50,271 nucleotides of DNA. Source: Macrostomum lignano (lineage: Eukaryota). The translations under genes were made by a program, and so were the position numbers. Within the stretch, counting starts at the first letter, position 1. Every line of letters begins with the position of its first letter. Below, piece after piece: positions 25,154-50,271 of the stretch. Location: positions 1 to 50,271 of the forward strand of contig NIVC01004330.1 in assembly GCA_002269645.1 (NCBI GenBank). Reading direction: 5' to 3'. The notes under the pieces were generated by a model. That model made no database searches and was not told the DNA's origin. It saw only the letters and a list, made by a program, of their open reading frames with translations.

Positions 25154-26621
25154 TCAAAACTTTGAGAAGAATTCCGTCACCATGTTCATAACCTTCTCAA
25201 AAAACATCAGACCAACGTGCGTGAACCAGGAAAAGTCGGACCCCAGACTGGACATTTTCAAAATGAACGGCAGATAGTCAGTCGACCCATTGTTGGGCTG
25301 CGGCCGGATCTGCAGCAGGTGGCACATCAGACCGTAGATGTCCACCTGGCGGAAACTTTTTCGTCTGTTGCCGTCAATAAGGAAATTGTGATTGAAACTG
25401 GGCCCAACGGCGAACATCGGCACCCGCATGTCGCTGTAGCTGTTGTCGAAGCCGTGGTGACCGGCACTTACTGGCTTGGTATCCTTGCTGGTCAGCACCA
25501 GGTATCCCTGGTCGGGCAGCACGAGCACCTCTGGCGTCCTGCGGTTTTTGGCGTAGTGGAATCGCTCCGGCAGACTGTCCTTGTCGAACACGCGCATGGA
25601 CAGGTTGCGCTGGCGCACCTGGTTGTTGAGGTACTCCACCAGCTGCTTCCGCTTACCCGGCTTGGCATTCATGGCCAGCAGCGGTCCGCTGTCCAGGACT
25701 CGGTCTACGAGCTCGTCCATGCTGCTGTTCAGGTGGATCACCTTGTCAGGCGTCATGCCCATCATGCCTGAAATGTTTTAAAACAGACGCACGATAAAGC
25801 CTGATCATATTTTTTAGATTCGAAAAATATATTTTTATCGGTGTCTAAATTACCTACGAATATGACCAATGGTTTTCTAAAGATGGTTTCTGTCCAGAAA
25901 AAAGATGGCTCTCACCGTGGTCAGACACGATCAGGACGTTGACTTTATCTGAGAATTTCTTCGCTTTGAGACCTTCGAATAGCGAGCGGATAGTGTCGTC
26001 AACTTTCTTTAGGGCCTCTCGGACCTGCTTTGACTTTGGACCAAACTTATGACCAGAACTGTCGGGCTCATTTAGGTACATTGTGGCCATCTGCACGTCC
26101 TTCTCGGTGATCCACTCCAGCACGGTGCTCACCCGGGTCTCAAAGCTCACACTTCCGCTGTAGTTGAACCAGTAGTCCTGACGAACGCCCTTGAACGAGA
26201 CCTCGCTGCCGGGCCAGAAGAACGTGGCCGACTTCAGTCCCTGCTTCTTCGCGTTGATCCAGATCGGCTCGGATGCGTTCCACCAGCGCTCATCTCGAGT
26301 GCCCTTGTTGAAGGAGGCGTTGAACAGCGGGTCGTACATGCTGTTGCCGACGATGCCGTGGCTCTCCTGGTAGAGTCCCGTGGCGATGGTCCAGTGGTTG
26401 GGGAAGGTCTTTGTGGCAAAGGCCGGCTTCATGGACTTGACGTGCACGCCCTGCTTGATGAGCGACCTCAGGAACTGCGTCTCGTTGGGGTACCAGTTGA
26501 GGTAGTCGTAGCGGAAGCCGTCGCAGGAGACCAGGACCAGCGGGTATCGGGCTGGGCTGGCCGCCGATGCGCAGGCAGCGGCGCAGAGCAGAGCGAGAGC
26601 GGCGAGGCCAATCGACTGCAT
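25154..26621 (-). CDS. ENPP-type phosphodiesterase, copy B; exons 26621-25916 and 25767-25154 (~439 aa; an upstream in-frame ATG at 26648 is possible)
   Basis: Same motifs and the same SDHG|M intron position as copy A, with EPDSSGHKFGP. Intron is 148 bp versus 812 bp in copy A. C-terminal tail differs. Confidence 0.92.
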
Positions 26622-28830
26622 TTCGAATCCGGCAGAGCAGAACACCATGGCTTTGAAATTATGCGTAGGTGAGTATTATATAGCGACCCTCAAGCGAGTC
26701 GGCTTCCATGAATCCATGCTGTAGCCATATCAGTTTTTGTTTGATTGCGAATTTGCGCAGCGCTTCTTCGATTCGACTGAAGGCAAAATGCGCATACAGC
26801 TATTCCTGTCAAGAATTTTTGCATTTGGGGATCTTTTCTACACAAATAATGTCTTGTGGAATGTGTTGAGCCTCATGAAAATTTGTGGCATGAGCTCTAT
26901 TCGTCAGTCCATGAGTTGCAAAATTTTCGATTTCCTATGGATACTAGACTCTTGGCGCTCATACCCCTTCGCAAATTCATTACGGGACAGAATTCATGCT
27001 CTGCTGTTTACTTTTTTTCTGCTTTTTGGAACGCGCCTTACGAGTATCTTCCTTGAATTGCACATTTAAACGACTTGTCTTTCGTCTGAGGAGCGAATTT
27101 AGCTGCGTGGTTGAATATTAAATGCTGCTTGACGTGTTTTTCTTCATTTTTGTCTGGTACATAAGCGTTGAAAAAAAACAGGGTAATAGTGAATTAAACT
27201 ACAGGCAGTTAAGATGTCTTCATTTTGACAGCCGTGGCAAATGTTTTTAGTAGATTTTTCACTTGCAGCACAAAAAAGCACCAAGCCAAACTGATTTCTT
27301 GGAGATGATTTTCAAACCAAAAACTCGTAGACTAGTCGTACCCGATAGCATTTTTCATATTGCTGTTGACCTTGTCTTTCGAAAGCTATCAATATTAAGC
27401 CAAGGCCATGCAAGCAAGGCTATAGGAGTCAACTAGCTCGTAGTCTATTGGTTGGAACAGACCATGATGGCCGTTTTTCTGCTGTAATTGATCAATCAAT
27501 AGCGCTCGCTCGATTTAGTCTGGCTACAAAATTCGGCGCTTTATCTTAATCTATTTTGGTTCTCAACTAGCAAACTCATTCGTTATAGAAACTCGATCCG
27601 CCCTCTCTGACTTTGCTGAGTCTCCTCTTCGATCGATCGAGATTTCAACTGTCCATGTGCCACTTTTCTGCTGTAGTCTCTGACACAACAGACGAGATCG
27701 TCTGGAAAGACACATGGCTGACTGAACCGTGACAGTAAAATGGTAGTTTAAAACCTGTTTAAAAGCGGGTTAATTTTTTTGACAGATCAGTTCCTCTTAT
27801 ATGACACATGTACTGTACATTTGTTTTACCAAGAATGCCAAGAATTACCATTTAGGCTCTACACTTTTTACTGCGAATACAGGTGTTGTACAGGTGTTGT
27901 ACATGTCTTCTTCTAATGCACACGAGAGGTTTTTTCAGAAGTTCTGACTTTTGCGCACGATTTACGAGTTCGATCTAATTTTTATGTGTCGGACCAAGTG
28001 CTTTACTCGTATTAAATAGAACCCGGCTCCCTCAGCCCGAGCGTCACGCCCTTAAGAACAGTTTCCAGCGGGCCAAGCCAACTATGGAGTTGACACACCC
28101 ATACCAACCAGCCCGGCTGCTACCAGATCCTAAAGGGCGGCTGAAGCGGCCTGCGGTGAACTCGGGCCATTCAGCTCAACGGCCTTCTAAGCCCTTGATC
28201 AAGGCTTGTCAGGCGGTAGCATAAAAATCAATCACGTAATGCTCAGGCAGCTCCAACTCCTGTCAGATAGTCACCCCAGCTTTAAGGTTGCATACGAGTT
28301 AGATTATGGTTACATAGGTTGCATATAGATCGCGAGGAGCAAGGACCACTAGTGAAACAGCTTGGGACGTAAAACTCAAGGATCGTGTATTTTAAAGAGG
28401 CAAACTTCCCGGAAAAGAAATACACTGCGGCGGAGATAGAAAAACTTTTTATAACATAATCTATGATTTAATTTGATCTGGGACAGTAGAGATTTCAATT
28501 CTTTAAATTTAAGGCCCTAGGCCTAGCAAGCTCAACATATTACTCTCTGTTGTATTTTAGATAGTTGTATAGTGAAAGTTTTATTATCTTCATGTTTTTT
28601 TATTTCATAAAACCCAAGCCAAAGTTGTAGTCACGCCCTTAAGTCACGCCCTTTGTCTACAATTGTAGACAAACAATTGGCACAAAAAAAATTTTGTTTC
28701 GTTCCTTTTTTAATTGAATCAAGTATATTTGTAATACATTTGTTGCATGCAGGTACTCTTAGCCTTAAGCAAAACCTTGGCTTTAAAATGAATAGCTTTC
28801 TAAAGACTATAAAAACAAGGGGTGCTGACC

Positions 28831-31581: not shown

Positions 31582-34500
31582 CTATCCCTGCCGCCTGACC
31601 TGACTCTCCCTGCCGCCTGACTCTCCCTGCCGTCTGACTCTCCCTGCCGCCTGACCTGACTCTCCCTGCCGCCTGACCTGACTCTCCCTGCCGCCTGACC
31701 TGACTCTCCCTGCCGCCTGACCTGACTCTCCCTGCCGTCTGACTCTCCCTTTCGTCTGGCTCCCTGTCGTCTGACTCTGCCGCCTGACTCTCCCTGCCAC
31801 CTGACTCTCCCTGCCACCTGACTCCCTGCCACCCGACTCTCCCTGCCACCTGACTCCCTGCCACCCGACTCTCCCTGCCACCTGACTCCCTGCCACCCGA
31901 CTCTCCCTGCCACCTGACTCCCTGCCACCCGACTCTCCTGCCACCCGACTCTCCCTGCCACCTGACTCCCTGCCACCCGACTCTCCCTGCCACCTGACTC
32001 CCTGCCACCCGACTCTCCCTGCCACCTGACTCCCTGCCACCCGACTCTCCCTGCCACCCGACTCTCCTGCCACCTGACTCTCCCTGCCACCCGACTCTCC
32101 CTGCCACCTGACTCCCTGCCACCCGACTCTCCCTGCCACCTGACTCCCTGCCACCCGACTCTCCCTGCCACCTGACTCCCTGCCACCCGACTCTCCCTGC
32201 CACCTGACTCCCTGCCACCCGACTCTCCCTGCCGCCTGACCTGACTCTCCCTGCCACCTGACTCCCTGCCACCCGACTCTCCCTGCCACCCGACTCCCTG
32301 CCACCCGACTCTCCCTGCCACCTGACTCTCCTGCCACCCGACTCTCCCTGCCACCCGACTCTCCCTGCCACCTGACTCTCCCTGCCACCCGACTCTCCCT
32401 GCCACCTGACTCCCTGCCACCCGACTCTCCCTGCCACCCGACTCTCCCTGCCACCTGACTCCCTGCCACCCGACTCTCCCTGCCACCTGACTCCCTGCCA
32501 CCCGACTCTCCCTGCCGCCTGACCTGACTCTCCCTGCCGCCTGACTCTCCCTGCCGCCTGACCTGACTCTCCCTGCCGTCTGACTCTCCCTTTCGTCTGG
32601 CTCCCTGTCGTCTGACTCTGCCGCCTGACTCTCCCTGCCACCTGACTCTCCCTGCCACCCGACTCTCCCTGCCACCCGACTCTCCCTGCCACCTGACTCT
32701 CCCTGCCACCCGACTCTCCCTGCCACCCGACTCTCCCTGCCACCTGACTCTCCCTGCCACCCGACTCTCCCTGCCACCCGACTCTCCCTGCCACCTGACT
32801 CTCCTGCCACCTGACTCTCCCTGCCACCCGACTCTCCCTGCCGCCTGACCTGACTCTCCCTGCCGCCTGACCTGACTCTCCCTGCCGTCTGACTCTCCCT
32901 TTCGTCTGGCTCCCTGTCGTCTGACTCTGCCGCCTGACTCTCCCTGCCACCTGACTCTCCCTGCCACCCGACTCTCCCTGCCGCCTGACCTGACTCTCCC
33001 TGCCGCCTGACCTGACTCTCCCTGCCGTCTGACTCTCCTTTCGTCTGGCTCCCTGTCGTCTCACTCTGCCGCCTGACTCTCCCTGCCACCTGACTCTCCC
33101 TGCCACCCGACTCTCCCTGCCACCCGACTCTCCCTGCCACCTGACTCTCCCTGCCACCCGACTCTCCCTGCCACCTGACTCTCCCTGCCACCCGACTCTC
33201 CCTGCCACCCGACTCTCCCTGCCACCTGACTCTCCCTGCCACTCGACTCTCCCTGCCACCTGACTCCCTGCCACCCGACTCTCCCTGCCACCTGACTCTC
33301 CCTGCCACCTGACTCCCTGCCACCCGACTCTCCTGCCACCTGACTCCCTGCCACCCGACTCTCCCTGCCACCTGACTCCCTGCCACCCGACTCTCCCTGC
33401 CACCTGACTCTCTGCCACCCGACTCTCCCTGCCACCCGACTCTCCCTGCCACCTGACTCCCTGCCACCCGACTCTCCCTGCCACCTGACTCCCTGCCACC
33501 CGACTCTCCCTGCCACCTGACTCCCTGCCACCCGACTCTCCCTGCCACCTGACTCCCTGCCACCCGACTCTCCCTGCCACCTGACTCCCTGCCACCCGAC
33601 TCTCCCTGCCACCTGACTCCCTGCCACCCGACTCTCCCTGCCACCTGACTCCCTGCCACCCGACTCTCCCTGCCACCTGACTCCCTGCCACCCGACTCTC
33701 CCTGCCGCCTGACCTGACTCTCCCTGCCACCTGACTCCCTGCCACCCGACTCTCCCTGCCACCCGACTCCCTGCCACCCGACTCTCCCTGCCACCTGACT
33801 CTCCCTGCCACCCGACTCTCCCTGCCACCCGACTCTCCCTGCCACCTGACTCTCCCTGCCACCCGACTCTCCCTGCCACCTGACTCCCTGCCACCCGACT
33901 CTCCCTGCCACCCGACTCTCCCTGCCACCTGACTCCCTGCCACCCGACTCTCCCTGCCACCTGACTCCCTGCCACCCGACTCTCCCTGCCGCCTGACCTG
34001 ACTCTCCCTGCCGCCTGACTCTCCCTGCCGCCTGACCTGACTCTCCCTGCCGTCTGACTCTCCCTTTCGTCTGGCTCCCTGTCGTCTGACTCTGCCGCCT
34101 GACTCTCCCTGCCACCTGACTCTCCCTGCCACCCGACTCTCCCTGCCACCCGACTCTCCCTGCCACCTGACTCTCCCTGCCACCCGACTCTCCCTGCCAC
34201 CCGACTCTCCCTGCCACCTGACTCTCCCTGCCACCCGACTCTCCCTGCCACCCGACTCTCCCTGCCACCTGACTCTCCCTGCCACCTGACTCTCCCTGCC
34301 ACCCGACTCTCCCTGCCGCCTGACCTGACTCTCCCTGCCGCCTGACCTGACTCTCCCTGCCGTCTGACTCTCCCTTTCGTCTGGCTCCCTGTCGTCTGAC
34401 TCTGCCGCCTGACTCTCCCTGCCACCTGACTCTCCCTGCCACCCGACTCTCCCTGCCGCCTGACCTGACTCTCCCTGCCGCCTGACCTGACTCTCCCTGC

Positions 34501-35372
34501 CGTCTGACTCTCCCTTTCGTCTGGCTCCCTGTCGTCTCACTCTGCCGCCTGACTCTCCCTGCCACCTGACTCTCCCTGCCACCCGACTCTCCCTGCCACC
34601 CGACTCTCCCTGCCACCTGACTCTCCCTGCCACCCGACTCTCCCTGCCACCTGACTCTCCCTGCCACCCGACTCTCCCTGCCACCCGACTCTCCTGCCAC
34701 CTGACTCTCCCTGCACTCGACTCTCCCTGCCACCTGACTCCCTGCCACCCGACTCTCCCTGCCACCTGACTCTCCCTGCCACCTGACTCCCTGCCACCCG
34801 ACTCTCCCTGCCACCTGACTCCCTGCCACCCGACTCTCCCTGCCACCTGACTCCCTGCCACCCGACTCTCCCTGCCACCTGACTCTCTGCCACCCGACTC
34901 TCCCTGCCACCCGACTCTCCCTGCCACCTGACTCCCTGCCACCCGACTCTCCCTGCCACCTGACTCCCTGCCACCCGACTCTCCCTGCCACCTGACTCCC
35001 TGCCACCCGACTCTCCCTGCCACCTGACTCTCCCTGCCACCCGACTCTCCCTGCCACCTGACTCTCCCTGCCACCCGACTCTCCCTGCCACCTGACTCTC
35101 CCTGCCACCTGACTCTCCCTGCCACCCGACTCTCCCTGCCACCTGACTCTCCCTGCCACCCGACTCTCCCTGCCACCCGACTCTCCCTGCCACCCGACTT
35201 TCCCTGCCACCTGACTCTCCCTGCCACCCGACTCTCCCTGCCACCTGACTCTCCCTGCCACCCGACTCTCCCTGCCACCTGACTCTCCCTGCCACCTGAC
35301 TCTCCCTGCCACCCGACTCTCCCTGCCACCCGACTCTCCCTGCCACCCGACTTTCCCTGCCACCTGACTCTC
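31578..35372. repeat. 3.8-kb satellite of 15/17-bp units (CTGACTCTCCCTGCCAC / CCGACTCTCCCTGCCAC / CTGACTCCCTGCCAC) with higher-order structure
   Basis: Directly visible. The variant block TTTCGTCTGGCTCCCTGTCGTC recurs near 31750, 32591, 32900, 33039, 34065, 34375 and 34515. Confidence 0.97.
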
Positions 35373-35943: not shown

Positions 35944-37736
35944 ATGGACTCGGGCTGGCAGCAGGTGGGGATGGTCTCCGACCTCGCCAAGGTGCGCTGC
36001 CGCCGGCTGTTCACCGAGCGAAGGGAGGACAGCATCGTCCTGGTGCACCTGCGGGGCCAGTTCTTCGCCATGAACGCCTGGTGTCCGCATCAGGGTAAAG
36101 GAGGGGGTAGTCTGCTCAGGATTCGAGTGCTGTGTGAATGTGTCTGCTCAGGATTCGAGTGCTGTGTGAATGTGTCTGATCAGGATTCGAGTGCTGTGTG
36201 AATGTGTCTGCTCAGGATTCGAGTGCTGTGTGAATGTGTCTGCTTAGGATTCTAGTGCTGTGTGAATGTGTCTGCTTAGAATTCTAGTGCTGTGTTAATG
36301 TGTGCTCAGGATTCGAGTGCTGTGTGAATGTGTCTGCTCAGGATTCGAGTGCTGTGTGAATGTGTCTGCTTAGGATTCGAGCGCTGTGTGAATGTGTCTG
36401 ATCAGGATTCTAGCGCTGTGTAACTGTGTCTGCTTAGGATTCTAGTGCTGTGTGAATGTGTCCGCTCAGGATTCGAGTGCTGTGTGAATGTGTCTGCTCA
36501 GGATTCGAGTGCTGTGTGAATGTGTCTGCTCAGGATTCGAGTGCTGTGTGAATGTGTCTGCAGGGTGAGTGCAGTGTGGATGTATCTGCAGGGTGAGTGC
36601 TGTGTGAATGTGTCTGCAGGGCGAGTGCAGTGTGAATGTACATGTATCTGCAGGGTGAGTGCTGTGTGAATGTGTCTGCAGGGTGAATGCTGTGTGAATG
36701 TGTGCAAGGGGTTGCTGGGTGAGCGCGAATAAAATGCAGTGCACATCACAGCGAGCTGATTGAAAATTTGGCCAGAACGAGGGCCAACCGCCAAGGCAGT
36801 GTGCATTCCTGACCATTAGAAAATCAAAGCCAGTGCACCCTGTGTGAGCAGGAGTACGAGTGCGTGCCTGCGTACAGTATCCGCGTGTTTGTATGTGCTC
36901 GGGATTCAGCGGAACCGGCAGAATTGCTTCAGCGCCGGTTCTGCTGGTTCTGATCAATTCTTGTATCAAGGCGAATCCCAACAGAAGTAACATGAGATTC
37001 GTTCAAATCCGGCAGGCGGGCCGCTGTTCCGCGGCGACATGGAGGACGTGAACGGGCAGCACTGCCTCGTCTGCCCGCTGCACCGGTACGCATTCAGCCT
37101 CAGCGACGGCACCGCCAGCTGCGGCCTGCGGGTAGGTTGCCGGTCCCTGAGCACTGAGCACTGAGCAGGCCTCTAAGAGCCGAGCCGGAGAAGCCGCCGT
37201 CGCGAACCCCTTTTCATCTCTCCCTCTCTCAAAATTTTGATGAGCTCCCGGCCCATCATTTTAATTTCGAGTCAGATTTTACCGTCGCGGCTCTTTGAGC
37301 ACCGCGGCTTTGACTTTGATGGGAGCAGGTGGTCGGCGGGGGAGGGGGGGCTGCCCTCGCTATCCAAGAGTCACGCGACCGCCGCCTGCCCACCCAAGCT
37401 GGCTAAATCCCTCTCCCGCCTCGCTATAGGGAGGATTTCATGAGTTCAAACCGGGCTTTGCCTCCGGGACAAGCCGGTTGTTGTCCCCGGGATCCGGCCG
37501 TCCGCTCCCGTGCGCCTGCAGCCTCGCGGCGGGTTTAATCAGCCAGCGCTGCTACCCTTGATTTCTTTTTGCGGCCGGCTGCCTCTCCCTAGCGGAAGTC
37601 GGGGTGGGGGAGAAGGGTGGAGCTCACGCGGCTGTTTTTGCCCTGTCTTTTGCAGCAGTCGACTTTCGAGTGCAAGGAAGAGGCGGGCCAGCTGTACATC
37701 CGGTGCCCCTTCCGGTTGTCGCTGCAGCCATTATGA
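35944..37736 (+). CDS. RFESD: Rieske [2Fe-2S] domain-containing protein, RFESD-like; exons 35944-36094, 37016-37131, 37656-37736 (115 aa)
   Basis: Rieske ligands CPHQ|GGPLFRGD and CLVCPLHRYAFSL; terminal exon QSTFECKEEAGQLYI. GT-AG junctions preserve frame. Resembles the RFESD pattern C.H.GGPL..GD.ED.....C.VCP.H.Y. Confidence 0.85.
36115..36700. repeat. Intronic minisatellite, 32-bp unit CAGGATTCGAGTGCTGTGTGAATGTGTCTGCT grading into a CAGGGTGAGTGC variant
   Basis: Tandem array in intron 1 of the Rieske gene. Confidence 0.93.
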
Positions 37737-38319
37737 GCAGTCTGTTCTCTGCTTTTTCATTAATTAGACAAAACTGACCTGACTCAGCCATGTGGCAGAC
37801 TGGATTCCGCACAAATATTCCATTGACATGGAAATATGCATGCATGTAACTGCACTGCTGTATAGAATCCCTGCTCAGCCTCGTGGGGACATGCCATGTC
37901 ACCTAATTTATGTTCTCACGCAGTAGTGCAAGCTCTGTAATAAGAAAACTTGACGGCTTGAGGGCTGAAAACTCAGTCCTTTTGTAATCCTGTCTCGCCT
38001 CCACACTTCCGCATTGCAACTCGAGCAAGCCTGTGTTTGTCCGGGGTGCAGCTCAACCAGCTTCCTGGAGTCGGAATGGCTGTACAAGCCTCTATGTCTG
38101 ACATTTGGCAAGCGGAGTCAGTAATGAATTTGTTTCACAGCTCAGTTTTTTTAGAGAAGACAAGTTCCAAAATCGTGCGTTTTACGAGCGTATGCTCTGC
38201 TGACCAATCAATTTTTTATTCTGGAACTGCATCTGCAGATCCATTTATAAGCTGTAAAATTAATCACTTCAAGTTTCTGACAGTCACATCCGCTCCAGAC
38301 AGTCAGATCGGCCAGATAG

Positions 38320-38720
38320 TCAGATCCGCCAGACAGTCAGATCCGCCACAGACAGGTGCAGATCCGCCACAGACAGGCACAGATCCGCCACAGGCAGTCA
38401 GATCCGCCACAGACAGGCGCAGATCCGCCACAGACAGTCAGATCCGCCACAGGCAGTCAGATCCGCCACAGACACGCGCAGATCCGCCACAGACAGTCAG
38501 ATCCGCCACAGGCAGTCAGATCCGCCACAGACACGCGCAGATCCGCCACAGACAGTCAGATCCGCCACAGGCAGTCAGATCCGCCACAGACACGCGCAGA
38601 TCCGCCACAGACAGGCGCAGATCCGCCACAGACAGGCACAGATCCGCCCCAGGCAGTCAGATCTGCCCAGACAGTCAGATCCGCCCAGGCAGGTACAGAT
38701 GAGCCACAGACAGTCACAGA
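38320..38720. repeat. Minisatellite, ~19-21-bp unit CAGATCCGCCACAGACAG(GC/TC)
   Basis: Tandem array between the convergent 3' ends of the Rieske and ROCO genes. Confidence 0.93.
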
Positions 38721-39500
38721 TCCACCGTGACACGGCGTCAAAGATAATATGATAAGAATTATTAAAAAATATCAAAAGACAAGTACGCTGTCAAGTATTG
38801 GCAAGGCGGCTACAATGAAAAGACCTAACTCATAAAATTATTCCCTGTGCGAGTATTATCGGCACACGAAGTAAGCAAATAAACTAAGACTTGTGTCTGA
38901 TCGTGGAACAAATAGTCCAACTCCAGCACTAAATTGCAATGCGGTGCCCGAAAGAATCACATTCAATTTTGCTCGGTAACCCTTTGCTTTCTGTTGAGAA
39001 AAGACTCTGGCCAAGGCCAGCGGCTTGCATGTGATGTGGAAAGGTAGCCGTGCATAAAAAACAAACTTATCTATCTCTGTCTTTAAAATATGCGGACTAT
39101 ATTTTTATTTTGCTCCAATAAAACTGACATTGAGAGGCCGGGCAGGTCAGCAATCAAAGCTCGGTACAAGATGAACGCAGAAAGGTAGGAAATTTGATTG
39201 CAGCATCAAGATAGTTTAACATACATGTACTCAGTCAGCAAGTCAGTGCATTGCAGATAGAAAAGTGTAGAAGTGTAGCATATAGAAAAACATCCCCAAG
39301 ACAAGTCTTCCTGCATTATTTAGTTCACATCCCAGAGTCTGGAATCAATCAGCGGGTTTGCCTCCTAGAGATATTTAATTAAACCTAAAAAACTACAAAG
39401 ATTAATAATGCGGGGAAATAAATAAGCCTCTTAAACATGGGGCAGTTGAAGTAAGGATTTCAGACTAAAAAAATCGCTGGTGTTTTCATTCGCGCTACCG

Positions 39501-42500
39501 TCACTGAATGTTGCAGACTTTGCTCCTGTTCTTCTTCAGTGACACCTGGCTGGCAGTCAGCGCCTCCGCCTCCGCCTTCTCGTCTGCCGCTGCTCGTCCA
39601 CCGCTGCTCCGCTGGCGCGGCGGCGTCTTCATTGTTGGCGCACCGCCGGCTTCGTTGGCCGCGGCCGCCGCCTCGAGCTGGCCGATGGCTACAGAAGTTC
39701 TGTGCCGCTGCAGCCTCTGCTTCGCTTCATCACCGGTGTCTTTTTTGCTTGCCACGTGCTTCTTTGATGCTATGTACTTTTCCTGCTCCTCCATGTACTT
39801 CATGTACTTTTTAACCGACTCGTTATACTGCGTATTGCCGAGCTTCAAAGCGTCCAGCTCCTTGTGCAGCAGATCGCGCAGGACGGCTTCGCCGGCGGAG
39901 AAGAGATTCTCCTGCGCGCCGGAGCCCGACGCCTCGTCGTCTGGCAACACCGTCACCCGGCCGTTGCCGGCTCTCTGGTGCTCCGGGCACAGCCACAGCA
40001 CCTTGCCGCTGCCCAGCGCACACTTGGACAGCCCGGAGTGGCGCTGCTCGCCCTCTGGAACATGCACACGGAAGACCGGATGAGACTCAGACAAAATTTC
40101 GAGCTGAGCGGCATTACAGGAGATCAATCAAACCTATGATCTATCAGTCAAATAAAAGTTCGAACATGGTCTGTATTTATGGATTGCTATTGTGGTCTGC
40201 TAAGGAAGAGTAGGAACTCTCTGAAACCGAATGCCCTGGGCTATTGCGCGTTCGAATCTCAGTTCTGGACACAGAACTACACTGTAGAAGCTGAAATTTA
40301 TGTTCAGTGACGAAAACCGTTGACTGTCATCGAGTTCTATATTCATGGTTGCGCATGAACTTGCGACCAAGTAACGCATAGAAATGCATTCACGGAGCAC
40401 TGAGTTTAAAAAAACCAGCAAACGGACTTTGAGCAATCGACACCCGCCCCACTCACTGGTGGCATCCGAGTACAGCTGCTGCACCGTTCGGTAGGCGTCG
40501 ATGAACGACTTCGGCGACACCGCAGCCTCCACACGGACTGCCTGCAGGAACTCCTCGGCTTGGATTCCCTCGAGGCAGTTCAACCGAATGCCGCTGGCCT
40601 GCAGCAGCGAGCAGATCCTTAGCAGGTACACTGAGGCGGCAGACAGCAGGTTTTCCCGGCCCGTCTTGCTGGCGGTCGCGAGGCTCACGGCCGGTCCGTG
40701 GGCGTGCCAGCCCTGTAGTGTTTCAAGGGATACATTGCGTTTTGGGAACCAAACCTATCATGCATTTCGACACTATAATCAATCTATTCTTAATAGTGGG
40801 GACATTGAGAAGCGTAAGTGTGAGAAGCGCGATGATGTTAAAGCATTCCAGGCCATGGATCGGAAGTTGTCCCGGTGTCCCGCAAAGCCCTGCTAAGAAC
40901 CGCCTGCGCTTTAATCTGCCATACCATGCAACTCACCCGCTGATTCTCGCAAAACACTCTGATCAGCACCTGTGGATTTGCGGTGGAAGGAAAAGCTGTA
41001 TAAAATTCAATCAATGGATCACACTGCACATTACTGCAATTTTGGTAAGGTTCGTAGGTAAACCAACCAATTCTTCCAGCTTGCCGCCGTCTGAATCCTT
41101 GCTCCGGCTCTCGTCACTGAAGTCGGTGACGTCGCTGAAGTCCGGCACAAGCAGCCGCGGCAGGTCGCTGTGGCTGAACTGCTTGAGAAACCGGCGCTGC
41201 GCAAGCTCGGCCTCCTCTCGAAACAGGCCGGGCTGGCTTGGCAACGGCATAGCAACGGTGGTCTTTCGTTTCATCAGCGGCACGTTTGCCGATCTTTTTT
41301 CGGCCTCTTTGGCCAGCAGACTTTTGATTCCGGCAACCAGTCTTTTAAATTCCAAAGCCGGAACATCCTTGCGAAAGTCGAACTCCTCGTAGCCCAGGCT
41401 GAGCATGCCCAGCTCCTGGGTCTTGAAGGCCTGCGTCTGGCCCACCACGACAGTCACAATCGGCTTGCGCAGGTTCTTTGCCGCGAAGCGAAACTCCATC
41501 ATGCAGTTGGCGCTGCGCTGGTACTCGTCGCTGACAAAAGCCAGGACTAGCGGGCACCGGCCGAGGCCCGAGCTGATGTCCTCGAATAGGCTGCGCTGCA
41601 AGTGAAACCGGACAGGGAGAGCTTCGTGTCTATCTGCTCCATTTTTACTGTTCTAACAAATTCCCACAACATGCCTTTTACAGACTGACACGATAACTAC
41701 TAACAGCCCTATAATCTAAGGATTGATATCAGAGATACAATGAGCTTTAATGAATGTGTGAATGCTCTTCTTCACGTTACACGTCGAGATCTTGAGATGT
41801 TTACGAGCATTGGAGATAAAATACCATCACTTCAAAGCTTTACTGACACATTCATCGATTTATAGTGTAATTAATATCTGCGAAACCTACGGTTCCAGTG
41901 TCCTTGACGTCGAGCCAGCATCGAATCCCCTCTGCTTCCAATCTCTCCCTGAGCCGACGCGGGTCACTGTCCTCGCAGCCAAGAGCTCCGTTTCGGGTTC
42001 CCTTCGCCACGGCGTCGTGAGAATTTGCCCAGCAGTAGGAAACAAAGACGTCCTTGTCGCGAGAGTCATCGCCACTGGGTTTTTGATTGGATGTTTCAAC
42101 CGCAGCCGAGACGTCCTTGATGACCTCTGCGAGCTGCCCTTCGTAGACGGACTTTTTGGCATCCGTCAGATCAATATACTTGTCTGTGCCGACGAGGAAG
42201 GCGAGCTCGGTGCAGTCCCGCCACGACTTGTCCGCCCCAACGCTGAGGTAGACGAGCTTCTTGCGCAGGTTGTTCTTGGCGCTGAACAGCGAGTTCAGGC
42301 AGGCCTTGTCTGAGCCGAAGGACTTTGTGAGGAACACGAGCACAGCGCTACAGTCGCTCATGTGCAGCTGCTTGTCCTCCTGCTGCTCGGGGTACGGCGG
42401 GTAGCTGAAAAGTGAACAGCATCTGGGATAAGCAAGGTGAACAGAAGCGAGGTGCACCAGAGTATTCCGCAATGGCTTACCAGCTGAGCCCTTCTGCCTC

Positions 42501-45500
42501 CAGCTTCTTGGCCACAGCCTCAGGGCAAGTTTGTCCTCTGTCCTTGCCGTCTTTCTGAAAATCATCCGCAAGAAACAGCAGACACACATCTCTGCTCATC
42601 TCCAGTCGAGCTCTGCGAAGCCGCAGCAGACTCTGTTCAAGCTGATGGTCGAACTCCGTCAGACTTTCTGGGCGGATGCTTGCGAGCAGCTGGCTCAGGT
42701 TTAGGATGTGAAACTCGAACGGGCACTGCAGGAATGACACCTGACGGCTGCTGGCCTTGCGAATCATGGCAACTCGGATGACGCTGCGCTCACTGTCACC
42801 CGATGAGGAATTCAGGCACTCGGGACAGGGCAGAATCTCTTCATAGTGGACGCCGTGGAACGTCTCCTTGATGAGACTGTCGAACACGTCGTTAATCATG
42901 AAGAGTACGTTCTCGGGCCTCGGTCCGAACACAGTCGCGATCAGGCGCTGTCTCTCGTCCATGGTGATGACGGCGATGTGGGCGTCCTTTCGGAGCAGCG
43001 AGCCGCGCTTCCAGATGGTGTTGCTGTCGGTGAACTCGAACAGCCGGACCTGAGCCCGGTTGAACAGCCCGGCTGGTAGGTAGTCGAACTGGTAGATGAA
43101 CCTCGCCAGCGTGTTGCCCTCGCCGTCCGCCTCTTGCGGGAACGAGTACTGCGCGAAGGTGTTCGAATTAAATCGCTAATTCACAATGGATCTCGGTTTT
43201 CCTGCATGAACTATGGGCAATGGCTTCAGTCTAGTTGTTTGAGCAAAGCACCTGCACCAGCCGACGTAGCGGAAGCGCCGTGGCCAAGGGCGTACTGTGA
43301 CACTGACAGACTGTTTTGTGACAGACTTGTAGGCCCAGAGTCTCAGCCCCAGACCGCAGTTGCCTGCCCCTTCTACCTGTTTCTTGAGCGCGTGTGCGCA
43401 AGAACTCACTAGTTTTTGTGTCTCTATCCATCTATCTATCTTGAACAAAACACAAGCTCGTCAGAATCAAAGTACCTCCGGCACGTCCTCTGGAAGCAAG
43501 CAGGGCACGATGTTGCAGTCCTCCTTCATCGCGTACGTTAAGTCGAAGGCCTCTGTAAGCTTCAGCAGCCACTCGTGAAGTGCTGGATCGAACTTGCTCC
43601 AGATCGCTGGAATGTCGGATCTTTTCAGCTGGCCGTTCTGCAGTTTGATGGGTTGTTAAAGTTCGGCTCAGGTTCATGCCATGCTGATAATGTACAAGCT
43701 ACTGTGACGGAGAAGCTCACCTGAATGGGCGAGTTCTTCACGCTGACAACGCACGCCATGACATCCACAATCCACTTCGGGTTGATGACCACTTTGTGTC
43801 TGAGGTAGTCCGTGTCGAAGTACTGCACCGAGCCGATGTCGTTCAGAAAGCTGACCGCTTGCCTCACGTGCTTGTCCTCGTAGAGGCCCTGCGACTGGGC
43901 CAGGTCGGCCACTTCCTGCCAGTCCAGAATTTTCACGTGGTCCCGGGTTCGTTTCTCGATCAGGCGGTCTTCAAAGTCCAGGAAGATCCGCGGCAGCCGC
44001 TCGCTCATGTACGGCTGCTGGAGGGCGACCTGAACCAGCTGCTTGCGGAGGTCGCCGATGCCCATGCCTGCGGTGGTGGGGGAATGCGGTGTTCTGCTTA
44101 GGAGGGGAAGCCACCTGGGCAGAAAGACTTGCTGTAACTGCTTACCGCTGTGCGATGAAATGATGTGAAATCCGCAGATCTGAGGATATCGCGATTTGAA
44201 CGTCTCCATGGGAATCTTGTCCGGTTTCTCCACCTGAAACAGTATATTTGTAACCTCCATTGTAGGCACAGTAAGGTGTTAGGTGACTTAAAGCACTTCT
44301 CACCTGATCAGCATGGGTGCCCACCACCAGAATCGGAGCGTTCGGTGCGTGGCTGGCGATGGAGCTGAGCCAGAAGTTTAGGCCGGCGTGCTCGTAGCCA
44401 GTCCTCACTGTGTACAGCAGCAGGTAGACAGCCCTGTGTGTGAGGAAGAACTGGTGGGTGTTGTAGTACACCCGCTGTCCAGCAAAGTCCCACGTGCTGA
44501 AGTGCAGCGGCGGACTGCCGTCGCCGATGTCGATTTGCCAGTCGCCAATGTCGATGCCGTCGGTGATCTCCTCGGCACCGATGACGCTGGTGGTCCCGGT
44601 GGTACTGCGCAGGGCGCGCAGCAAGCTGGTCTTCCCAACTCCGCCTGGAAGCGGTAAGAAGCTGATTAACTATGCACACTGTTCTGACCGGGTACCACAT
44701 GCTCCGGCCAGGAGAGACCCGGAAACTTACCCAGTCCGACAAACATCAGCTTTGTTCTCTTGCACTCCACTTGGTCGGAAGCGAGAAATTTGAGGTAGCT
44801 GAGCATAGCGCTCGAGCCCCTCTTGGCAACCTCCACAGGCGGAGTCTGCAGAGACGGGCACCTGGACACGTCCACGTGACTCAGTTGTGGCAGCTCAGAC
44901 AGACAGGGCGACAGGGACTTCAGCCTCGGATTGTGATCGAGGACCAGCCTTTGCAGCTTTTTCAAGCTTTTTATCTTGTCAGGAACTTGATGGATTGCCT
45001 GCAGTGAGATGTGACGCTTGTGCACTCCAATGGCCACTGATAAAGTTTATCTAAAAAAACAGTCTCAAAGGAGTATTTAAGAAGCCACATATCCCGCTTA
45101 CCTGATGCGAAAGTCGCAGCTCCCTGAGGTTGGTCAGCTCGAACAGGCAGGGCGGGATCCCGCCGGTTTCATCATCGTCCACGCTCTCCAGCCCCATGCG
45201 CGGCACGTCAGTCAGCATGTAGTGAAGGCCGCGGCAGTCCGCGATCCGTTTGGCTTGCTCCTCGGTGATGAGCAGGCTGAAGAACTGCTGCTCCGGCGGC
45301 ACGGGCTCCAGGCCCGCCAGTGTGACGCCAGGGTTGCGCAGGTAAGTCGCATCCAAAGGCGATGCTGTTCCCGCGCCGCTGTCGTGCTCATCCATCTGGT
45401 CCGCCACTCTGTCAGGCCAAGCAATCCCGTCGATGACGAGCTCCTGCAGCGAGCGCAGGTTGGCGAACTCCTTCGGCAGAGTGCGGATCGGCAGCTGCAG

Positions 45501-48500
45501 GAGGTGCAGCATGGTTAGTCTGTCTAGCTGTCCGATGGATGCTGGAAGGGCAGTGATGAGGCACCTGTCAAGCGTCAGAGACTCGAGCTTGGTGCTGCAG
45601 GTGTTTGGCAGCTGTGAGACCTTCGCGATGCTGATGGTGAGGCTCTGCAGATTAGGAGCGTTGCAGTCAATTGACAGCAGGTCGGACTGGGTTATCGTGA
45701 GGCTTCGCAGGCGCTGCATCGGCCAGCTTTTGTCCAGACTCTGCATCTTCTCCATCCTGTGCAGATGGAGAGTCTCTAATCCGGTGAGGCCCGTCAGGCA
45801 GGAGGCGCTGCTGATGAGGCGCGAGCTGATGAGGGCCGAGCGGACGCAGCTGCCGAAAGTGGCCAGAGTGGCCGCCACAGCCGCTTCTCCCTCGCCTGCA
45901 GCTGCGGAGCCGACCAGCTCGTCAATGAGGGTCGGGCTGCCGGCAGCCAGCTGGTGAGCCCTGCACACGGGCTGCAGGTCCTGGCCCTGCTGCTGCTGCG
46001 CCTGCAGAACCAGCGGCCCGCCAGGGGGCTGAGTGAACTCCGCAGTCAGGCGCTTCTTGAGGTCTTCGAGTCCATCGGGCTGCTCAGCGGCTGATGCGGC
46101 GAAGAGGCTGCGCCAGTGCGAGAGGGCGGCTCCGAGCAACAGCAGCCGCTTCACGACAGCCTCCGCAACTGAGCGGCAATGGCCGGGGCCGGTGAGCAGC
46201 TCGTGGCATGGCAGCATCAGCTGAGGGTGGGGGTGGGGTGGCAGCATCAGCTGAGGGTGGGGGTGGGGTGGCAGCATCAGCTGAGGGTGGGGGTTGGGTG
46301 GCAGCATCAGCTGAGGGTGGGGGTGGGGTGGCAGCATCAGCTGAGGGTGGGGGTGGGGTGGCAGCATCAGCTGAGGGTGGGGGTGGGGTGGCAGCATCAG
46401 CTGAGGGTGAGTGGGGTGGCGGCATCAGCTGAGGGTGGGTGGGGTGGCGGCATCAGCTGAGGATGGGTGGGGTGGCAGCATCAGCTGAGGGTGAGTGGGG
46501 TGGCGGCATCAGCTGAGGGTGGGTGGGGTGGCAGCATCAGCTGAGGGTGGGTGGGGTGGCGGCATCAGCTGAGGGTGAGTGGGGTGGCAGCATCAGCTGA
46601 GGGTGGGTGGGGTGGCAGCATCAGCTGAGGGTGGGTGGGGTGGCGGCATCAGCTGAGGGTGAGTGGGGTATCAGCTAAGGATAGGGTGGGGTGGCAGCAT
46701 CAGCTGAGGGTGGGTGGGGTGGCAGCATCAGCTGATGGTGGGTGGAGCGGCAGCATCAGCTGGTATTCAGCCCCTTACCCTGTGCTGCATCAAAGCCCTG
46801 ACGGCAGCCTGTGCTGTCAGGTGGCAGTCCAGAGCTGATGGCAGTGGGTGCTTCACTCCTGCAGAGTCCACCAGGTGCACGTCCGTCACGGAACCTGCGT
46901 GTTAGTTAAGCAGGGAGTCAATGATTTAGTGAAAATGGTCCCAGTAAGGAACTCAGACGGAATCCACTGAGCACGGTGTTTACTAACCGCTGTTGCACAG
47001 CAGGTGCGCTTTCAGTTTGCCAGAATCTGCTACATCCAGGATGCTGGGCTGGCACAACAGGCGGCCCTCTTCGCTGGTGAGTTCGGGCAGGAAAACCCAC
47101 AGGAAGCCGTGGCCAACGCCGGCCTTCTTCGCCAGAGACGCCAGCACACTGCGGCCGAAGCCGGCGGGCCCTCGAAGCCGACGCAGCGGCAGGGCTGGCC
47201 GTAGAGGATGGAGTCGTCCGTCAGGTCGCTGGTCTGATTCCAGCGGGGCAGGACGTTCGGGCTGGGGAAATTGGGTATCGGTAGCGCAGGATCGCTGATC
47301 GCTGAGGCTGAAGTGGTGCGCGAGTTAAGCAGGCCGTTAGCGCAGCTGTCCACCTGCAGCGGAGTATTTCTAATGCTATTTCTAATGCTATTTCTAATGC
47401 TATTTCTAATGCTACGCGCTTACAGCTGAAGTTCGCTCTGTCCAGCCGGTCGGGAGCTCTGAAGCTGCCAGCACTGATTTCAACCGTCACTGCAGCCAGT
47501 GCGGCGTCTGCCGGTTGCAGAGTAACCGACTTGGAGTCGGCCTTGACGACCCTGCTGAGTTCGCCGCCGGGTTTTCCGGACTTCCCGGCTTCGAGTCTCA
47601 GCCAGTCGCCAGGGCTGAGCTCTCTCGAGTAGTTCACGGCCTGGAGTTGGAGCGGTCTATGAGTTTCACTGTGCCGTTGGAAACAGAAGAAGATATTCAT
47701 TAAAAACCCACCGGGAAATTCGAAGCGCTGACGCAGACGGCGGCACCCGCCGAAGCGTTGAAAACCCAGCCGTAGTTCCTGCGCGGCACGAGCACCTTTC
47801 GGACGGTAACTCCATTCTCCAGCACCTCCAACAGGTCGCACGAGCCGCCCAGCTTCATTCTGTTCTCCTCCCTGTCCTGAAGAGCCACGAGAGGTGCCGA
47901 GTTGTGCCGCGACATCTCCGGCTGCAGATCGAAGGTCAGCCGCTTCTCCTGGTGCCCCGCCGACTTGTTGTCCAGCGAGATCTCCAGACTGCACTCTTTG
48001 CGCAGGAATTCCGAAAACTCCAGCGACTGAGCGTCGGGACTCGAATCCGGGTCTTTGCTGCTCTCTTTTGGGTACAAAATGAGCACGTTGAGAATCACGA
48101 TTCTCTCCTGATCTTTGGGCGACAATGCGAAGTACGCCGTCCGCTTCTGATCCTGCTCGCCGCCTGACACTGCGGCACCCGGGTCCACCGTGGCAGAGTT
48201 GCAGATCACGTGACGGGATGAAGTCACCTGGAATTCCGTGAGCTCGTACAGATTACTGCGGAAGGTGAACAGTGCCTCAATAATTGTTTTTATAACGGTT
48301 TCTCACCTTCAACTCCGTCTGCCCGGGGGCCAGCAGCTGCAGAGCGACTACAGCTGAGAAGCTGGGCTGCATCTCGGTTTTCTCCTTCAGGCAGAGCAGG
48401 CGGCTGTCTTCGGGAAAATCTTCGCAACAGCGGCTGTGTCGGCAGGGTCATCCGGGAAGTCTTCCGTCACACCGACCGGGAGCTGCTCAGCGTAGGTCGC

Positions 48501-50271
48501 TGGCAGCCAGGGAATTCGGTTGGTCAGCCGCACAGCCTCCCTGGGCGACTGCATAGTAACGCAGGGGAACAGCCCCGTGGGCGGGACGTCCACCGGCTCG
48601 CTGACGTGGCAGTCCTCGAACGAGCCGCTGCCCCGCTGGTCCACCGAGAACAGGACCCGCGCCCGGCTGGGGCCCACGAACCGCAGCTGGCAGCGCACGT
48701 GGCAGCCCGGGGCCGCTTCGGGGCCGGAGAACTTGAACTTCGGGTCCGGCTCTGCCGCTCCGCCAGCTGTGAGCAGTCTGCGGTTTGTGTCAAGATGGCG
48801 TGGATATTTTGCATTTGCAATGCATTGGCTTTGAGTCCGGCTCAGCTTCAACTGAGTTGTCTTAGTCTAGCACCATCAATCAGGAGCTCTATCACCTGCC
48901 GTCCACGCCGCTGTAACCAACAGAGCCAGGCAGCGTGCCGGGCTGGGCCATCACGGGAAAGTCGGCCGGCACGACTCCAATGGAAATATTTCCTTTAACG
49001 CCCTTGTTCTCAATGCCTGCAATGAAGTCACTTACAGTTAAGCGACGTACGCCAGTGGTTCTGGTTTCGATTGAGTTCCGCAGTCCGGCAACTTACAAAT
49101 CTCAAACGAACTGCTGCTCCTGGTCAGGCGTCTCTCCCCGATCAGGGTGGCCACGGGAACGAATATGTTGGAGGCGGCCAGCCCAGCAGATTCCTGCAGC
49201 GTGTTGAACCAGTAGAACGCGACGCCCGTCTCCTGCCACACCGAGCAGAAGGACCTCAGAGCGAAGCTGAACCTGCGGTCCACGCTGAGTGCGCCGTCCA
49301 TTACATCGTCAACGGGCTGGAAGGCCAACCAGTGGGGATCCCAATCACCATTTATCGGCAAGAGCTAAAACAGCAAGCCGCGCTCACATTAACAGCGGAC
49401 AGCCGGAAGGTGACAGTAATCGGCTCCTCCAGCAGCACCTGGCTTGTGGAGAAAACCGCATCTGCGGGCACGGTGCAGCAAACGCATATTCAGGCTTCTA
49501 AATATCATTATAAAAAGTTTTCATTTTCTCACCTGTCTGGCTTTCGGATAGCTTTGGATAAACCTCCAAGTACCTCGGCGTATGCTTTCTAAAATAGCAG
49601 AAGCGAGCAGAGGTCATCGAGTCAAGTTCTGCTTCATCTTCCTAAACCCCAAAAAGTTTTCGTATTCTGATAACTCTCTGATCAGTTTTGATTCATGACT
49701 GATTGTTGCAAGAAGCCAATTCTGAAGCACCAACACTTTGCAAAACTTTTTCAATGAGACTTTTTTTAACTATACAGCCCCAAAAAATTAGTCGTCAACT
49801 CACTCCAAAGCAGGACGCTGAGCTGCTGCTGCTGGGAACCACTGGGGCTGATGCTGAAGCTGACCTCAGGCGCCAGCACCGACTGCAGCGGGGCGCTGGG
49901 CAGAGCCGCACGCACCGGCTGCTGTCCGCAATGTCGCCATCGTCGATGTAGCCCGGCAGGACACGGCTGGGCCGCACATCACTGCCCCGCCCAGAGCCGC
50001 GCGGCGCAGCGGCCGCAGACGCCGCAGGAGTCACAGCTGGCCCGCCGAGGGCGCCGCAGAGGCAGCGGCCGGAGCGCCGGAGTCGATCCGGTTGAAGGCG
50101 CAGTCGGAGCCGCCGACCGAGCAGCTGCCGCACAGCGAGCAGACCGACTGCTGCGGCTCGCCGTCCAGCTGCTGCAGCTCCCAGCAGTGCTCGCTGTGGA
50201 CGGAGCAGTTCTCTGCTCAGGCGGGGAACGGCGGTTGCGCTGGCCAGTTTGTTACCGGGTAGTTCGTGAGG
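39501..50271 (-). CDS. Multi-exon kinase-less ROCO protein: Cys-rich - SPRY - unknown - LRR - Roc GTPase - COR - TIR - TIR - C-terminal domain (5' end beyond window; apparent frameshifts in the 5' part)
   Basis: SPRY: LTRSSSSFEI|CIENKG..GNISIGVV...PG...SVGYSGVDG|RL...GLFPCVTMQS (48.5-49.1 kb). LRRs at 44.8-45.8 kb. P-loop GLG|GVGKTS split by intron 44645-44730, then ITDGIDI, WDFAGQ, YYNTHQFFLT, VGTHAD. COR: FLNDIGSVQYF, INPKWIVDVM, LPAGLFNRAQVRL. TIR-like SAVLVFLTKSF and DVFVSYCW...FVSDEYQRSANCMMEF. C-terminal GKVLWLCPEH. No kinase motifs. Several exon boundaries are approximate. Confidence 0.88.
46207..46762. repeat. G-rich intronic minisatellite, 28-30-bp unit GGCAGCATCAGCTGAGGGTGGGGGTGGGGT
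   Basis: Tandem array inside the ROCO gene. The proximal units are exactly 30 bp. Confidence 0.95.

Follow-up and report, generated by a model that had tools for sequence, protein, structure and literature searches.

A predicted SPRY-ROCO-TIR gene of the flatworm Macrostomum lignano: a kinase-less LRR-Roc-COR protein with two TIR domains and a putative membrane anchor

Known ROCO proteins form COR-mediated dimers in which the nucleotide state of Roc controls the C-terminal output, and TIR domains, when induced to self-associate, signal either as enzymes or as adaptors. The 'ecTIR-DC' families are said to stem originally from the bivalve work of Gerdol et al. in 2017. These classes comprise large LRR-plus-TIR proteins without transmembrane segments (PMC6321704), and the immunome of Aplysia holds ROC/COR-containing TIR ('TLR/MyD88-like') proteins with Mbt, EF-hand, Death and NHR domains (PMC9334734). 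Bacterial LRR-AP-GTPase-COR (LRR-Roc-COR) conflict proteins bear variable, interchangeable C-terminal effectors (PMC8195603). Here we describe a gene of this general kind in a 50,271-nucleotide (nt) stretch of Macrostomum lignano DNA (assembly GCA_002269645.1, contig NIVC01004330.1, positions 1 to 50,271; hereafter the window), which encodes a SPRY-ROCO-TIR protein lacking a kinase.

The minus strand of the window from 50212 to 39501 corresponds to exons 4-25 of a 25-exon gene for a protein of ~2900 amino acids (aa). The order of modules is a Cys-rich region, SPRY, a middle region of ~400 aa, LRR, Roc, COR-A, COR-B, a first and a second TIR (TIR1, TIR2), a conserved tail, a charged linker and a polybasic CaaX end. 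Even the raw open reading frame (ORF) pieces, taken stop to stop on the minus strand, give Pfam matches to LRR, Roc, COR-A, COR-B and TIR_2 by themselves, and they are linked by canonical GT-AG introns, all 70-300 nt long except one of 558 nt. The frame from the LRR to the stop codon (46220-39501) is intact, with 4938 nt or 1645 codons after splicing. The predicted protein PAA58707.1 (BOX15_Mlig008399g1, UniProt A0A267ECV5; 2913 aa) maps as 25 canonical exons to a locus on contig NIVC01002342.1, hereafter L001, which shares 97.4% DNA identity with the window. What the window holds is thus not the same sequence, but a second copy (allele or homeolog) of BOX15_Mlig008399g1. Such a copy fits the duplicated blocks of the M. 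lignano assembly, which amount to 180 Mb at an identity of at least 95% in a DV1 line that is a recent polyploid (PMC5730564). An exhaustive HMMER search with the SPRY segment also returned a 92%-identical protein of 2457 aa, whose 90% cluster contains A0A1I8IUY9 and PAA58707.1, both from M. lignano.

The ROCO core is the best defined part of the protein. Pfam scans of the spliced window product give contiguous matches to Roc (70 bits), COR-A (95 bits) and COR-B (95 bits), together with LRR_8 (48 bits) and LRR_14 (49 bits). Motifs G1, G3 and G4 of the GTPase can be read intact from the sequence as GLGGVGKTS (the P-loop, split over the junction of exons 15 and 16), WDFAGQ and GTHADQ. Among solved structures, the Roc-COR part best matches residues 1334-1716 of human LRRK2 (E=1.4e-39), followed by the Roco protein of Chlorobium (C. 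tepidum; E=2.6e-30) and then LRRK1. With Roc followed directly by COR, the protein is assigned to the ROCO proteins on sequence grounds. No kinase family (Pkinase, PK_Tyr_Ser-Thr) was detected at E<=0.05 in Pfam scans of the window product and of the intact 2913-aa PAA58707.1, and TIR1 lies directly after COR-B, where LRRK1 and LRRK2 carry their kinase. Judged by domain content, the protein therefore falls outside the LRRK1/LRRK2 subfamily, in which kinase and WD40 follow COR. The same scans gave no match to NB-ARC or NACHT, which likewise places it outside the STAND TIR receptors (TIR-NLRs), a group it resembles in logic alone. The first-pass annotation had read an LRR-Roc-COR protein without kinase, with SPRY upstream and two TIRs downstream, and Pfam and homology bear out that order. 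The UniProt entries A0A1I8IUY9, A0A267ECV5 and related ones are automatically named 'non-specific serine/threonine protein kinase' and have no detectable kinase domain; the name is an annotation error propagated from similarity to LRRK.

The features of the gene, all on the minus strand and given from 5' to 3', are the following.

49804-50212, minus strand: exon 4, Cys-rich region (ENCSVHSEHC...CSLCGSC...CDSCGVCGRC...), conserved in scallop XP_060065175.1.
49388-49588, minus strand: exons 5 (49588-49533) and 6 (49461-49388), linker into SPRY.
48525-49154, minus strand: SPRY, SPRYD3-like (PDB 2yyo_A); exon 7 (49316-49097), exon 8 (49016-48896) and the start of exon 9 (48777-).
Part of 46779-48524, minus strand: middle region, with the remainder of exon 9 (to 48307) and exons 10 (48227-47712) and 11 (47640-47424).
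Part of 46779-48524, minus strand: middle region continued, exons 12 (47307-46988) and 13 (46894-46779).
46221-46778, minus strand: intron 13, nearly all tandem repeat.
44837-46220, minus strand: exon 14 (46220-45102) and most of exon 15 (44998-44731), with an Ala/Gln-rich lead-in and then LRR from ~45788 (Pfam).
44304-44752, minus strand: Roc, end of exon 15 and exon 16 (44644-44304) (Pfam Roc, LRRK2 match).
44492-44475 and ~44318-44307, minus strand: Roc motifs DFAGQ and THAD, respectively.
43476-44233, minus strand: COR-A, exons 17 (44233-44146), 18 (44067-43721) and 19 (43637-43476) (Pfam).
42690-43148, minus strand: COR-B, first part of exon 20 (43148-42481) (Pfam).
42167-42590, minus strand: TIR1, divergent, end of exon 20 and first part of exon 21 (42404-41891) (Pfam, family profile, alignment).
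41374-42055, minus strand: TIR2, end of exon 21 and first part of exon 22 (41595-41068) (Pfam TIR_2).
39978-41208, minus strand: conserved C-terminal domain, rest of exon 22, 33-nt microexon 23 (40969-40937), exon 24 (40712-40457) and start of exon 25 (40054-).
39501-39977, minus strand: low-complexity charged linker, polybasic stretch, CaaX (KKNRSKVCNIQ, 39521-39504) and stop.
39104-39379, minus strand: likely 3' untranslated region, with ATTAAA at 39379 and AATAAA at 39109 as the first non-intronic poly(A) signals.

The stop codon occupies 39503-39501, so that 39501, given earlier as the edge of the annotated region, is the 3' end of the coding sequence. Exons 1-3 (aa 1-444 of PAA58707.1) lie beyond position 50271, and 50271-50213 belongs to intron 3. 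An ATG at 49617 had been considered as the start codon and was rejected, since transfer of exons from PAA58707.1 and L001 puts exons 1-3 beyond the window; the boundaries first drawn for exons 7, 12, 20 and 22 were likewise replaced after the exons of PAA58707.1 had been mapped. Intron 13 contains a 28-30-nt tandem repeat of ~19.5 copies at 46209-46762, with a copy number that differs from that of L001. Translated in one frame, this repeat stays open and spells out PHPHPQLMLP over and over, with ATGs in frame, giving a misleading 448-aa ATG-initiated ORF that runs into the LRR exon.

Conservation in a scallop argues that these modules make up a single protein. The scallop protein XP_060065175.1 (P0070, 3222 aa) has Pfam SPRY (72 bits), LRR, Roc, COR-A, COR-B and TIR_2 in the same order, and aligns with the flatworm protein in three collinear blocks: the N-terminal and Cys-rich part (E=7e-18), SPRY (E=2e-15) and the stretch from LRR to tail (E=0, 37% identity over 1456 aa). 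Because of this collinearity, SPRY and ROCO-TIR are taken to belong to one conserved gene. The shared order also points to an old fusion, conserved between Platyhelminthes and Mollusca, and hence to an old spiralian family. Its members would be recognised by the series Cys-rich, SPRY, LRR, Roc, COR, TIR, TIR, tail and CaaX, which was found here with the ends CSIQ and CNIQ.

The SPRY domain was identified through homology. A phmmer search of the spliced segment against the PDB retrieved the SPRY domain of SPRYD3 (2yyo_A) with E=9.3e-13 over 144 residues, in an alignment that covers YFEV-like, GW..S.GYH.DDG-like and LFP.V.M motifs. Exhaustive HMMER searching of 1.84 billion representatives found 72 relatives through the segment, and nine of the ten that were tested match Pfam SPRY strongly (43-302 bits). 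A word-indexed search with the crude SPRY and middle region had returned no relatives, since its prefilter missed those that exhaustive HMMER recovered. Considering the SPRYD3 match and the transitive homology to Pfam SPRY proteins, the segment is best regarded as a real but divergent SPRY domain. A 14-bit Pfam SPRY match of the crude gene model was dropped, as it is absent with refined exons. The first-pass annotation had placed SPRY at the N-terminus; the domain itself was confirmed by SPRYD3 rather than by Pfam, and its position was not, given that the Cys-rich exon (50212-49804) precedes it and ~444 aa more lie further upstream outside the window. SPRY is thus an internal module.

The regions around SPRY are less well characterized. 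The N-terminal region outside the window (L001 3001-5186, aa 1-444 of PAA58707.1) has no Pfam domain, and residues 186-531 of the N-terminal part are homologous to scallop residues 404-768 (E=7e-18). Parts of this region resemble, by eye, the winged-helix motifs of COR (e.g. ...RGIIIYLKRLRIVVTDPPWF...). The ~400 aa between SPRY and LRR are mostly beta, have no assignable domain and are shared with the M. lignano paralog P0028; by sequence, the middle region gave in the PDB an insignificant Spt5 KOW-like match (E=1.8) and nothing else. Two M. lignano paralogs that are not ROCO proteins, P0032 (A0A1I8IX70, 612 aa) and P0028 (A0A1I8F3A9, 925 aa), likewise carry the Cys-rich, SPRY and middle module, and one of them is named 'PLAT domain-containing'; this distribution suggests that the module has been shuffled as a unit. 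The Cys-rich region, the 400-aa middle, the CaaX box, the degeneracy of TIR1 and the interrupted upstream frame had all been overlooked by the first-pass annotation.

The two TIR domains differ markedly in their support and in their putative active sites. TIR2 scores 52.7 bits against Pfam TIR_2 on the window product (cut-off 28) and 56.9 bits on PAA58707.1, so the earlier call of tandem TIRs holds firmly for this domain; for TIR1 the Pfam backing is weak, at 19.2 bits (E=0.0018), below the cut-off. A TIR1 profile built from 15 homologs matched TIR structures in 33 of 36 cases (best E=0.0025), including TLR15/TLR2, TLR5, plant TIRs and MyD88, and lies closest to the TIRs of TLRs. Homologs list both PF01582 and PF13676, and TIR1 is probably a divergent TIR. 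The TIR2 sequence NCMMEFRF (41508-41485) keeps a Glu within a family-wide C-M-M-E-h-R-F motif that aligns to WCWDEL of the catalytic Cat1 TIR, and both the Glu and the surrounding motif are kept in all relatives, across four phyla. The corresponding TIR1 sequence, KACLNSLF, has Ser at the catalytic position, where none of the aligned relatives has Glu. The Glu of TIR2 would be necessary, and not sufficient, for the predicted NADase-type catalysis.

TIR2 is followed by a family-specific domain of ~200 aa that is conserved from flatworm to mollusc and rotifer. Its invariant residues are C, E, W and H in LCExExGWH and W, L, C and H in WLCxxH; the WLCPEH tail noted earlier is therefore real and corresponds to the second of these motifs. 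An AlphaFold model of the tail, built on a stretch of P0022 nearly identical to the window sequence, shows an alpha/beta fold with a confident core (predicted local distance difference test, pLDDT, 73; predicted template modelling score, pTM, 0.66). A search of the PDB with the tail sequence gave no match. The window protein ends in the polybasic KKNRSKVCNIQ*, with a Cys at position -4 as in a CaaX box, and full-length relatives end in CVLQ, CVLQ, CTIH, CNLL, CMIL, CCVQ and CSIQ. Both the tail invariants and CaaX-like ends are present in 8 full-length relatives. In line with established knowledge of CaaX processing, the polybasic stretch and the conserved CaaX predict prenyl-dependent attachment to a membrane.

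We consider it probable that these elements together form a one-gene, kinase-less SPRY-ROCO-TIR protein which works as a membrane-anchored, GTPase-switched TIR device. C-terminal prenylation (farnesyl, with X=Q) and the polybasic patch would hold the protein at the membrane, while SPRY, the middle region and the LRR would offer surfaces for ligands or partners that keep the Roc-COR dimer inactive. Binding, or a change in nucleotide state, may then rearrange the COR-mediated dimer so that the TIRs self-associate, with TIR2 as the putative active TIR and TIR1 as a non-catalytic partner surface for it. For the output, NAD+ cleavage or a product of the cyclic ADP-ribose (cADPR) type seems slightly likelier than pure recruitment of adaptors. 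Such a logic would be the GTPase-switched counterpart of the STAND-switched TIR receptors, and the proposal made earlier, of a dimerising immune receptor regulated by GTP and analogous to TIR-NLRs, whose TIRs are brought side by side when COR dimerises, can be kept as a reasonable inference. We think it unlikely that the further version applies, in which the family is an animal membrane-anchored machine where a prenylated Roc-COR dimer gates a catalytic TIR2 and a pseudo-TIR1, and the tail is a new metal-binding module that links the two TIRs with the membrane or with a partner. If true, it would be a third independent sensor-switch-TIR receptor design, beside the STAND-based TIR-NLRs and bacterial systems such as Thoeris.

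Several results weigh against the main explanation. No significant Pfam SPRY (PF00622) match was obtained on single ORF pieces, the window exons, the refined N-terminus or PAA58707.1, and the structure model of the middle region, made from a two-sequence alignment, is unusable (pLDDT 42). The best solved match of TIR2, the Cat1 TIR, is weak (E=0.024), and a Glu at the catalytic position also occurs in non-enzymatic TLR-type TIRs and is no proof of catalysis. The tail model matched no PDB fold (best E=1.1, TM 0.18, with matches to a FERM lobe that are not significant), and any role of the tail, metal binding included, is a guess from its four invariant Cys/His residues. Finally, the window copy shows seven breaks of the frame upstream and none in the 5-kb core, a clustering that random consensus error alone would hardly produce.

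A competing view of function is that the two TIRs serve purely to recruit further TIR proteins, be they MyD88- or SARM-like adaptors or TLRs. The protein would then be a scaffold for Toll-type signalling or a regulator of it, a role proposed for the kinase-less MFHAS1 of vertebrates, and no NAD-derived product would arise. The adaptor role is the classical one for metazoan TIRs, and the loss of the Glu in TIR1, the proximity of the TIR1 profile to the TIRs of TLRs and the filing of ROCO-TIR proteins with TLR and MyD88-like proteins in the Aplysia literature (PMC9334734) all agree with this view. It has to be set against the conservation of the TIR2 Glu and its motif across four phyla and the catalytic nature of the nearest solved relative of TIR2, weak as that match is. 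A recent preprint also describes catalysis as widespread among animal TIRs, even those of TLR type (bioRxiv 10.64898/2026.04.20.719644). On balance, we give pure recruitment a chance somewhat short of even, nearly that of the enzymatic reading.

A second alternative concerns the window copy itself, which carries seven frame-breaking deletions relative to L001: at 50070, 50041, 49986, 49897 and 49804 in exon 4, at 48411 in exon 9 and at 47173 in exon 12. Each is of 1 nt except that at 49986 (2 nt), and all lie upstream of the LRR. This copy could be a decaying duplicate in which the deletions are real and no full-length protein is made, leaving a truncated LRR-Roc-COR-TIR-TIR-CaaX product or an incipient pseudogene, with function carried by the L001 copy. 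In favour of decay, seven of the seven frame-breaking indels fall within ~2 kb of upstream coding sequence, and exons 13-25 (~5 kb) have a single in-frame 3-nt deletion, at 39619, even though the introns of both halves are rich in indels. Two public models of the sister locus, that of L001 and an ML2-based one, read straight through all seven break sites, and the 34%-identical paralog P0028 reads through the break in exon 12. The recent polyploidy of the DV1 line and its duplicated blocks (PMC5730564) provide a setting for decay, and a remnant of this ROCO-TIR family that is clearly dead is found elsewhere in the window (628-1980). On the other side, the upstream exons differ between the copies mainly by synonymous substitutions (21 versus 14 non-synonymous), with a ratio of non-synonymous to synonymous differences per site (pN/pS) of 0.22 compared with 0.38 in the core. 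Purifying selection has thus acted on these upstream exons, and any loss of constraint must be very recent. Moreover, every deletion occurs in a run of C or G or in a GC-rich context, with exon 4 in sequence of 68-76% GC, where short-read polishing is weakest. Deletions of 1-2 nt in such places are a signature of uncorrected long-read consensus error, and the pattern suggests errors of this kind. Between an assembly artefact and real recent decay we lean modestly towards the artefact, which leaves the decaying duplicate as the somewhat less probable of the two.

Two devices that would restore the frame by splicing were rejected. An 86-nt 'intron' (48470-48385) bridging one break is an artefact of the 1-nt deletion, as shown by the transcript-based model, and 'model A', which skips 47423-47171 to give an intact ORF of 2300 aa, is an artefact of a 1-nt deletion according to both the transcript-based model and paralog P0028. 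No small GT-AG intron convincingly resolves the break in exon 12.

It is very improbable that the SPRY exons form a separate SPRYD3-like gene, arranged head to tail upstream of an independent LRR-Roc-COR-TIR-TIR gene, with the fusion as an artefact of the gene model. For such a division one can cite the stand-alone nature of SPRYD3, the best solved SPRY match, the lack of a listed SPRY in most of the ROCO-TIR relatives first found, the ATG-initiated ORF at 46397-45051, which would let the ROCO gene start at ATG 46397 in the repeat-derived MLPPHPHPQL... stretch, and the polycistronic precursor transcripts of M. lignano, which can merge genes (PMC5730564). Nevertheless, the junctions of the SPRY, middle and LRR exons are all canonical and compatible in phase, each upstream exon scores as coding in the expected frame under a codon model trained on the ROCO core only, and the low pN/pS of these N-terminal exons marks them as constrained coding sequence. 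No AATAAA or ATTAAA occurs on the minus strand from 50271 down to 41751, and hence none between the SPRY and LRR exons. The relatives without SPRY in the first homolog list are mostly partial proteins, and the scallop protein keeps this order and aligns collinearly to either side of the supposed border. RNA-seq (StringTie/TACO) underlies the GenBank gene models for this assembly, with boundaries cut at experimentally mapped trans-splice and poly(A) sites before ORFs were called (PMC5730564), and PAA58707.1 remains one ORF despite this cutting of units by the TBONE pipeline. Separate transcripts for the SPRY exons had been allowed for in the first-pass annotation; RNA-seq-derived PAA58707.1 joins them to the rest at the 97.4%-identical locus.

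The remainder of the window contains other genes, gene remnants and satellites. The dead ROCO-TIR fragment at 628-1980 on the plus strand is compressed: it retains the end of Roc (44% identity), a COR-B piece (925-1059) 91% identical to the main gene, a WLC tail that an in-frame stop interrupts (KLL*LCPEH) and, at the end, a CaaX-like motif (KVCSLQ); its TIRs are missing. An ENPP-type gene is present in two near-identical copies ~18 kb apart, at 6336-8461 and 25154-26648 (both minus strand), whose first exons match Pfam Phosphodiest with 255 and 259 bits; the pair is a local segmental duplication. At 16208-18785 (plus strand) three consecutive long ORFs of retroelement-like character were found, with a weak RVT_1 match of 23.7 bits and nothing in Pfam for ORFs 2 and 3; the last resembles, by eye, a tyrosine-recombinase/DIRS-type protein. 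An ATG-initiated ORF of 266 aa at 3127-3927 (plus strand) has a signal-peptide-like start and is Cys-rich; it looks lectin/PAN-like by eye and has no Pfam match at E<=0.001. Satellite arrays occupy 4342-5571 (19-nt unit, 65 copies), 31598-35372 (17-nt unit, 224 copies, 68% GC with a strong GC skew) and 36110-36703 (32-nt unit, 19 copies), and a further one at 38279-38716 (19-nt unit, 22 copies) lies just downstream of the main gene, as it also does downstream of the sister copy L001.

With respect to known systems, the gene represents no new class: proteins of the ROCO-TIR kind are already catalogued in molluscs and other invertebrates, and the gene itself has been deposited in GenBank and UniProt as a hypothetical protein. 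The Glu asymmetry between TIR1 and TIR2, the Cys/His tail domain and the conserved CaaX end may be under-described in the literature. Its value lies in being a clean, fully dissected ROCO-TIR example in a genetically tractable flatworm, amenable to RNA interference and transgenesis. If TIR2 proves catalytic and gated by Roc, it would link an LRRK-type GTPase switch to TIR enzymology and could inform how Roc-COR controls effectors in LRRK2.

The nearest relative, PAA58707.1, shares exons, domain order and the CNIQ end with the window copy, and differs in being unbroken where the latter has its seven deletions. The molluscan ROCO-TIR proteins (scallop, and Aplysia LOC106011403) also have LRR-Roc-COR-TIR-TIR, the LCExExGWH...WLCxxH tail and a CaaX-like end, with a core that is 34-38% identical. 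They differ in accessory domains, which in Aplysia are Mbt, EF-hand, Death and NHR, and in scallop an extra N-terminal SPRY and an intact EF-hand; the flatworm SPRY has diverged too far to be recognised by the Pfam model. SPRYD3, which provides the closest solved SPRY, is a small stand-alone protein, whereas the flatworm domain is an internal module of a ~2900-aa protein. LRRK2 and LRRK1 have the LRR-Roc-COR core in common with the flatworm protein, in which no ankyrin or armadillo N-terminus was detected and the kinase and WD40 are replaced by two TIRs and a predicted prenylated tail. MFHAS1 (MASL1), a kinase-less vertebrate ROCO protein linked to regulation of the Toll pathway, is likened to it by architecture alone: it too has LRR-Roc-COR, and lacks TIR, SPRY and CaaX. 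Plant TIR-NLRs and bacterial LRR-AP-GTPase-COR proteins follow the same logic of a repeat sensor, a nucleotide switch and an effector that acts on oligomerisation (PMC8195603), the bacterial versions carrying other effectors. The switch of the flatworm protein would be a Roc GTPase in place of the NB-ARC/NACHT ATPase of TIR-NLRs, so that the resemblance is one of analogy and not of membership.

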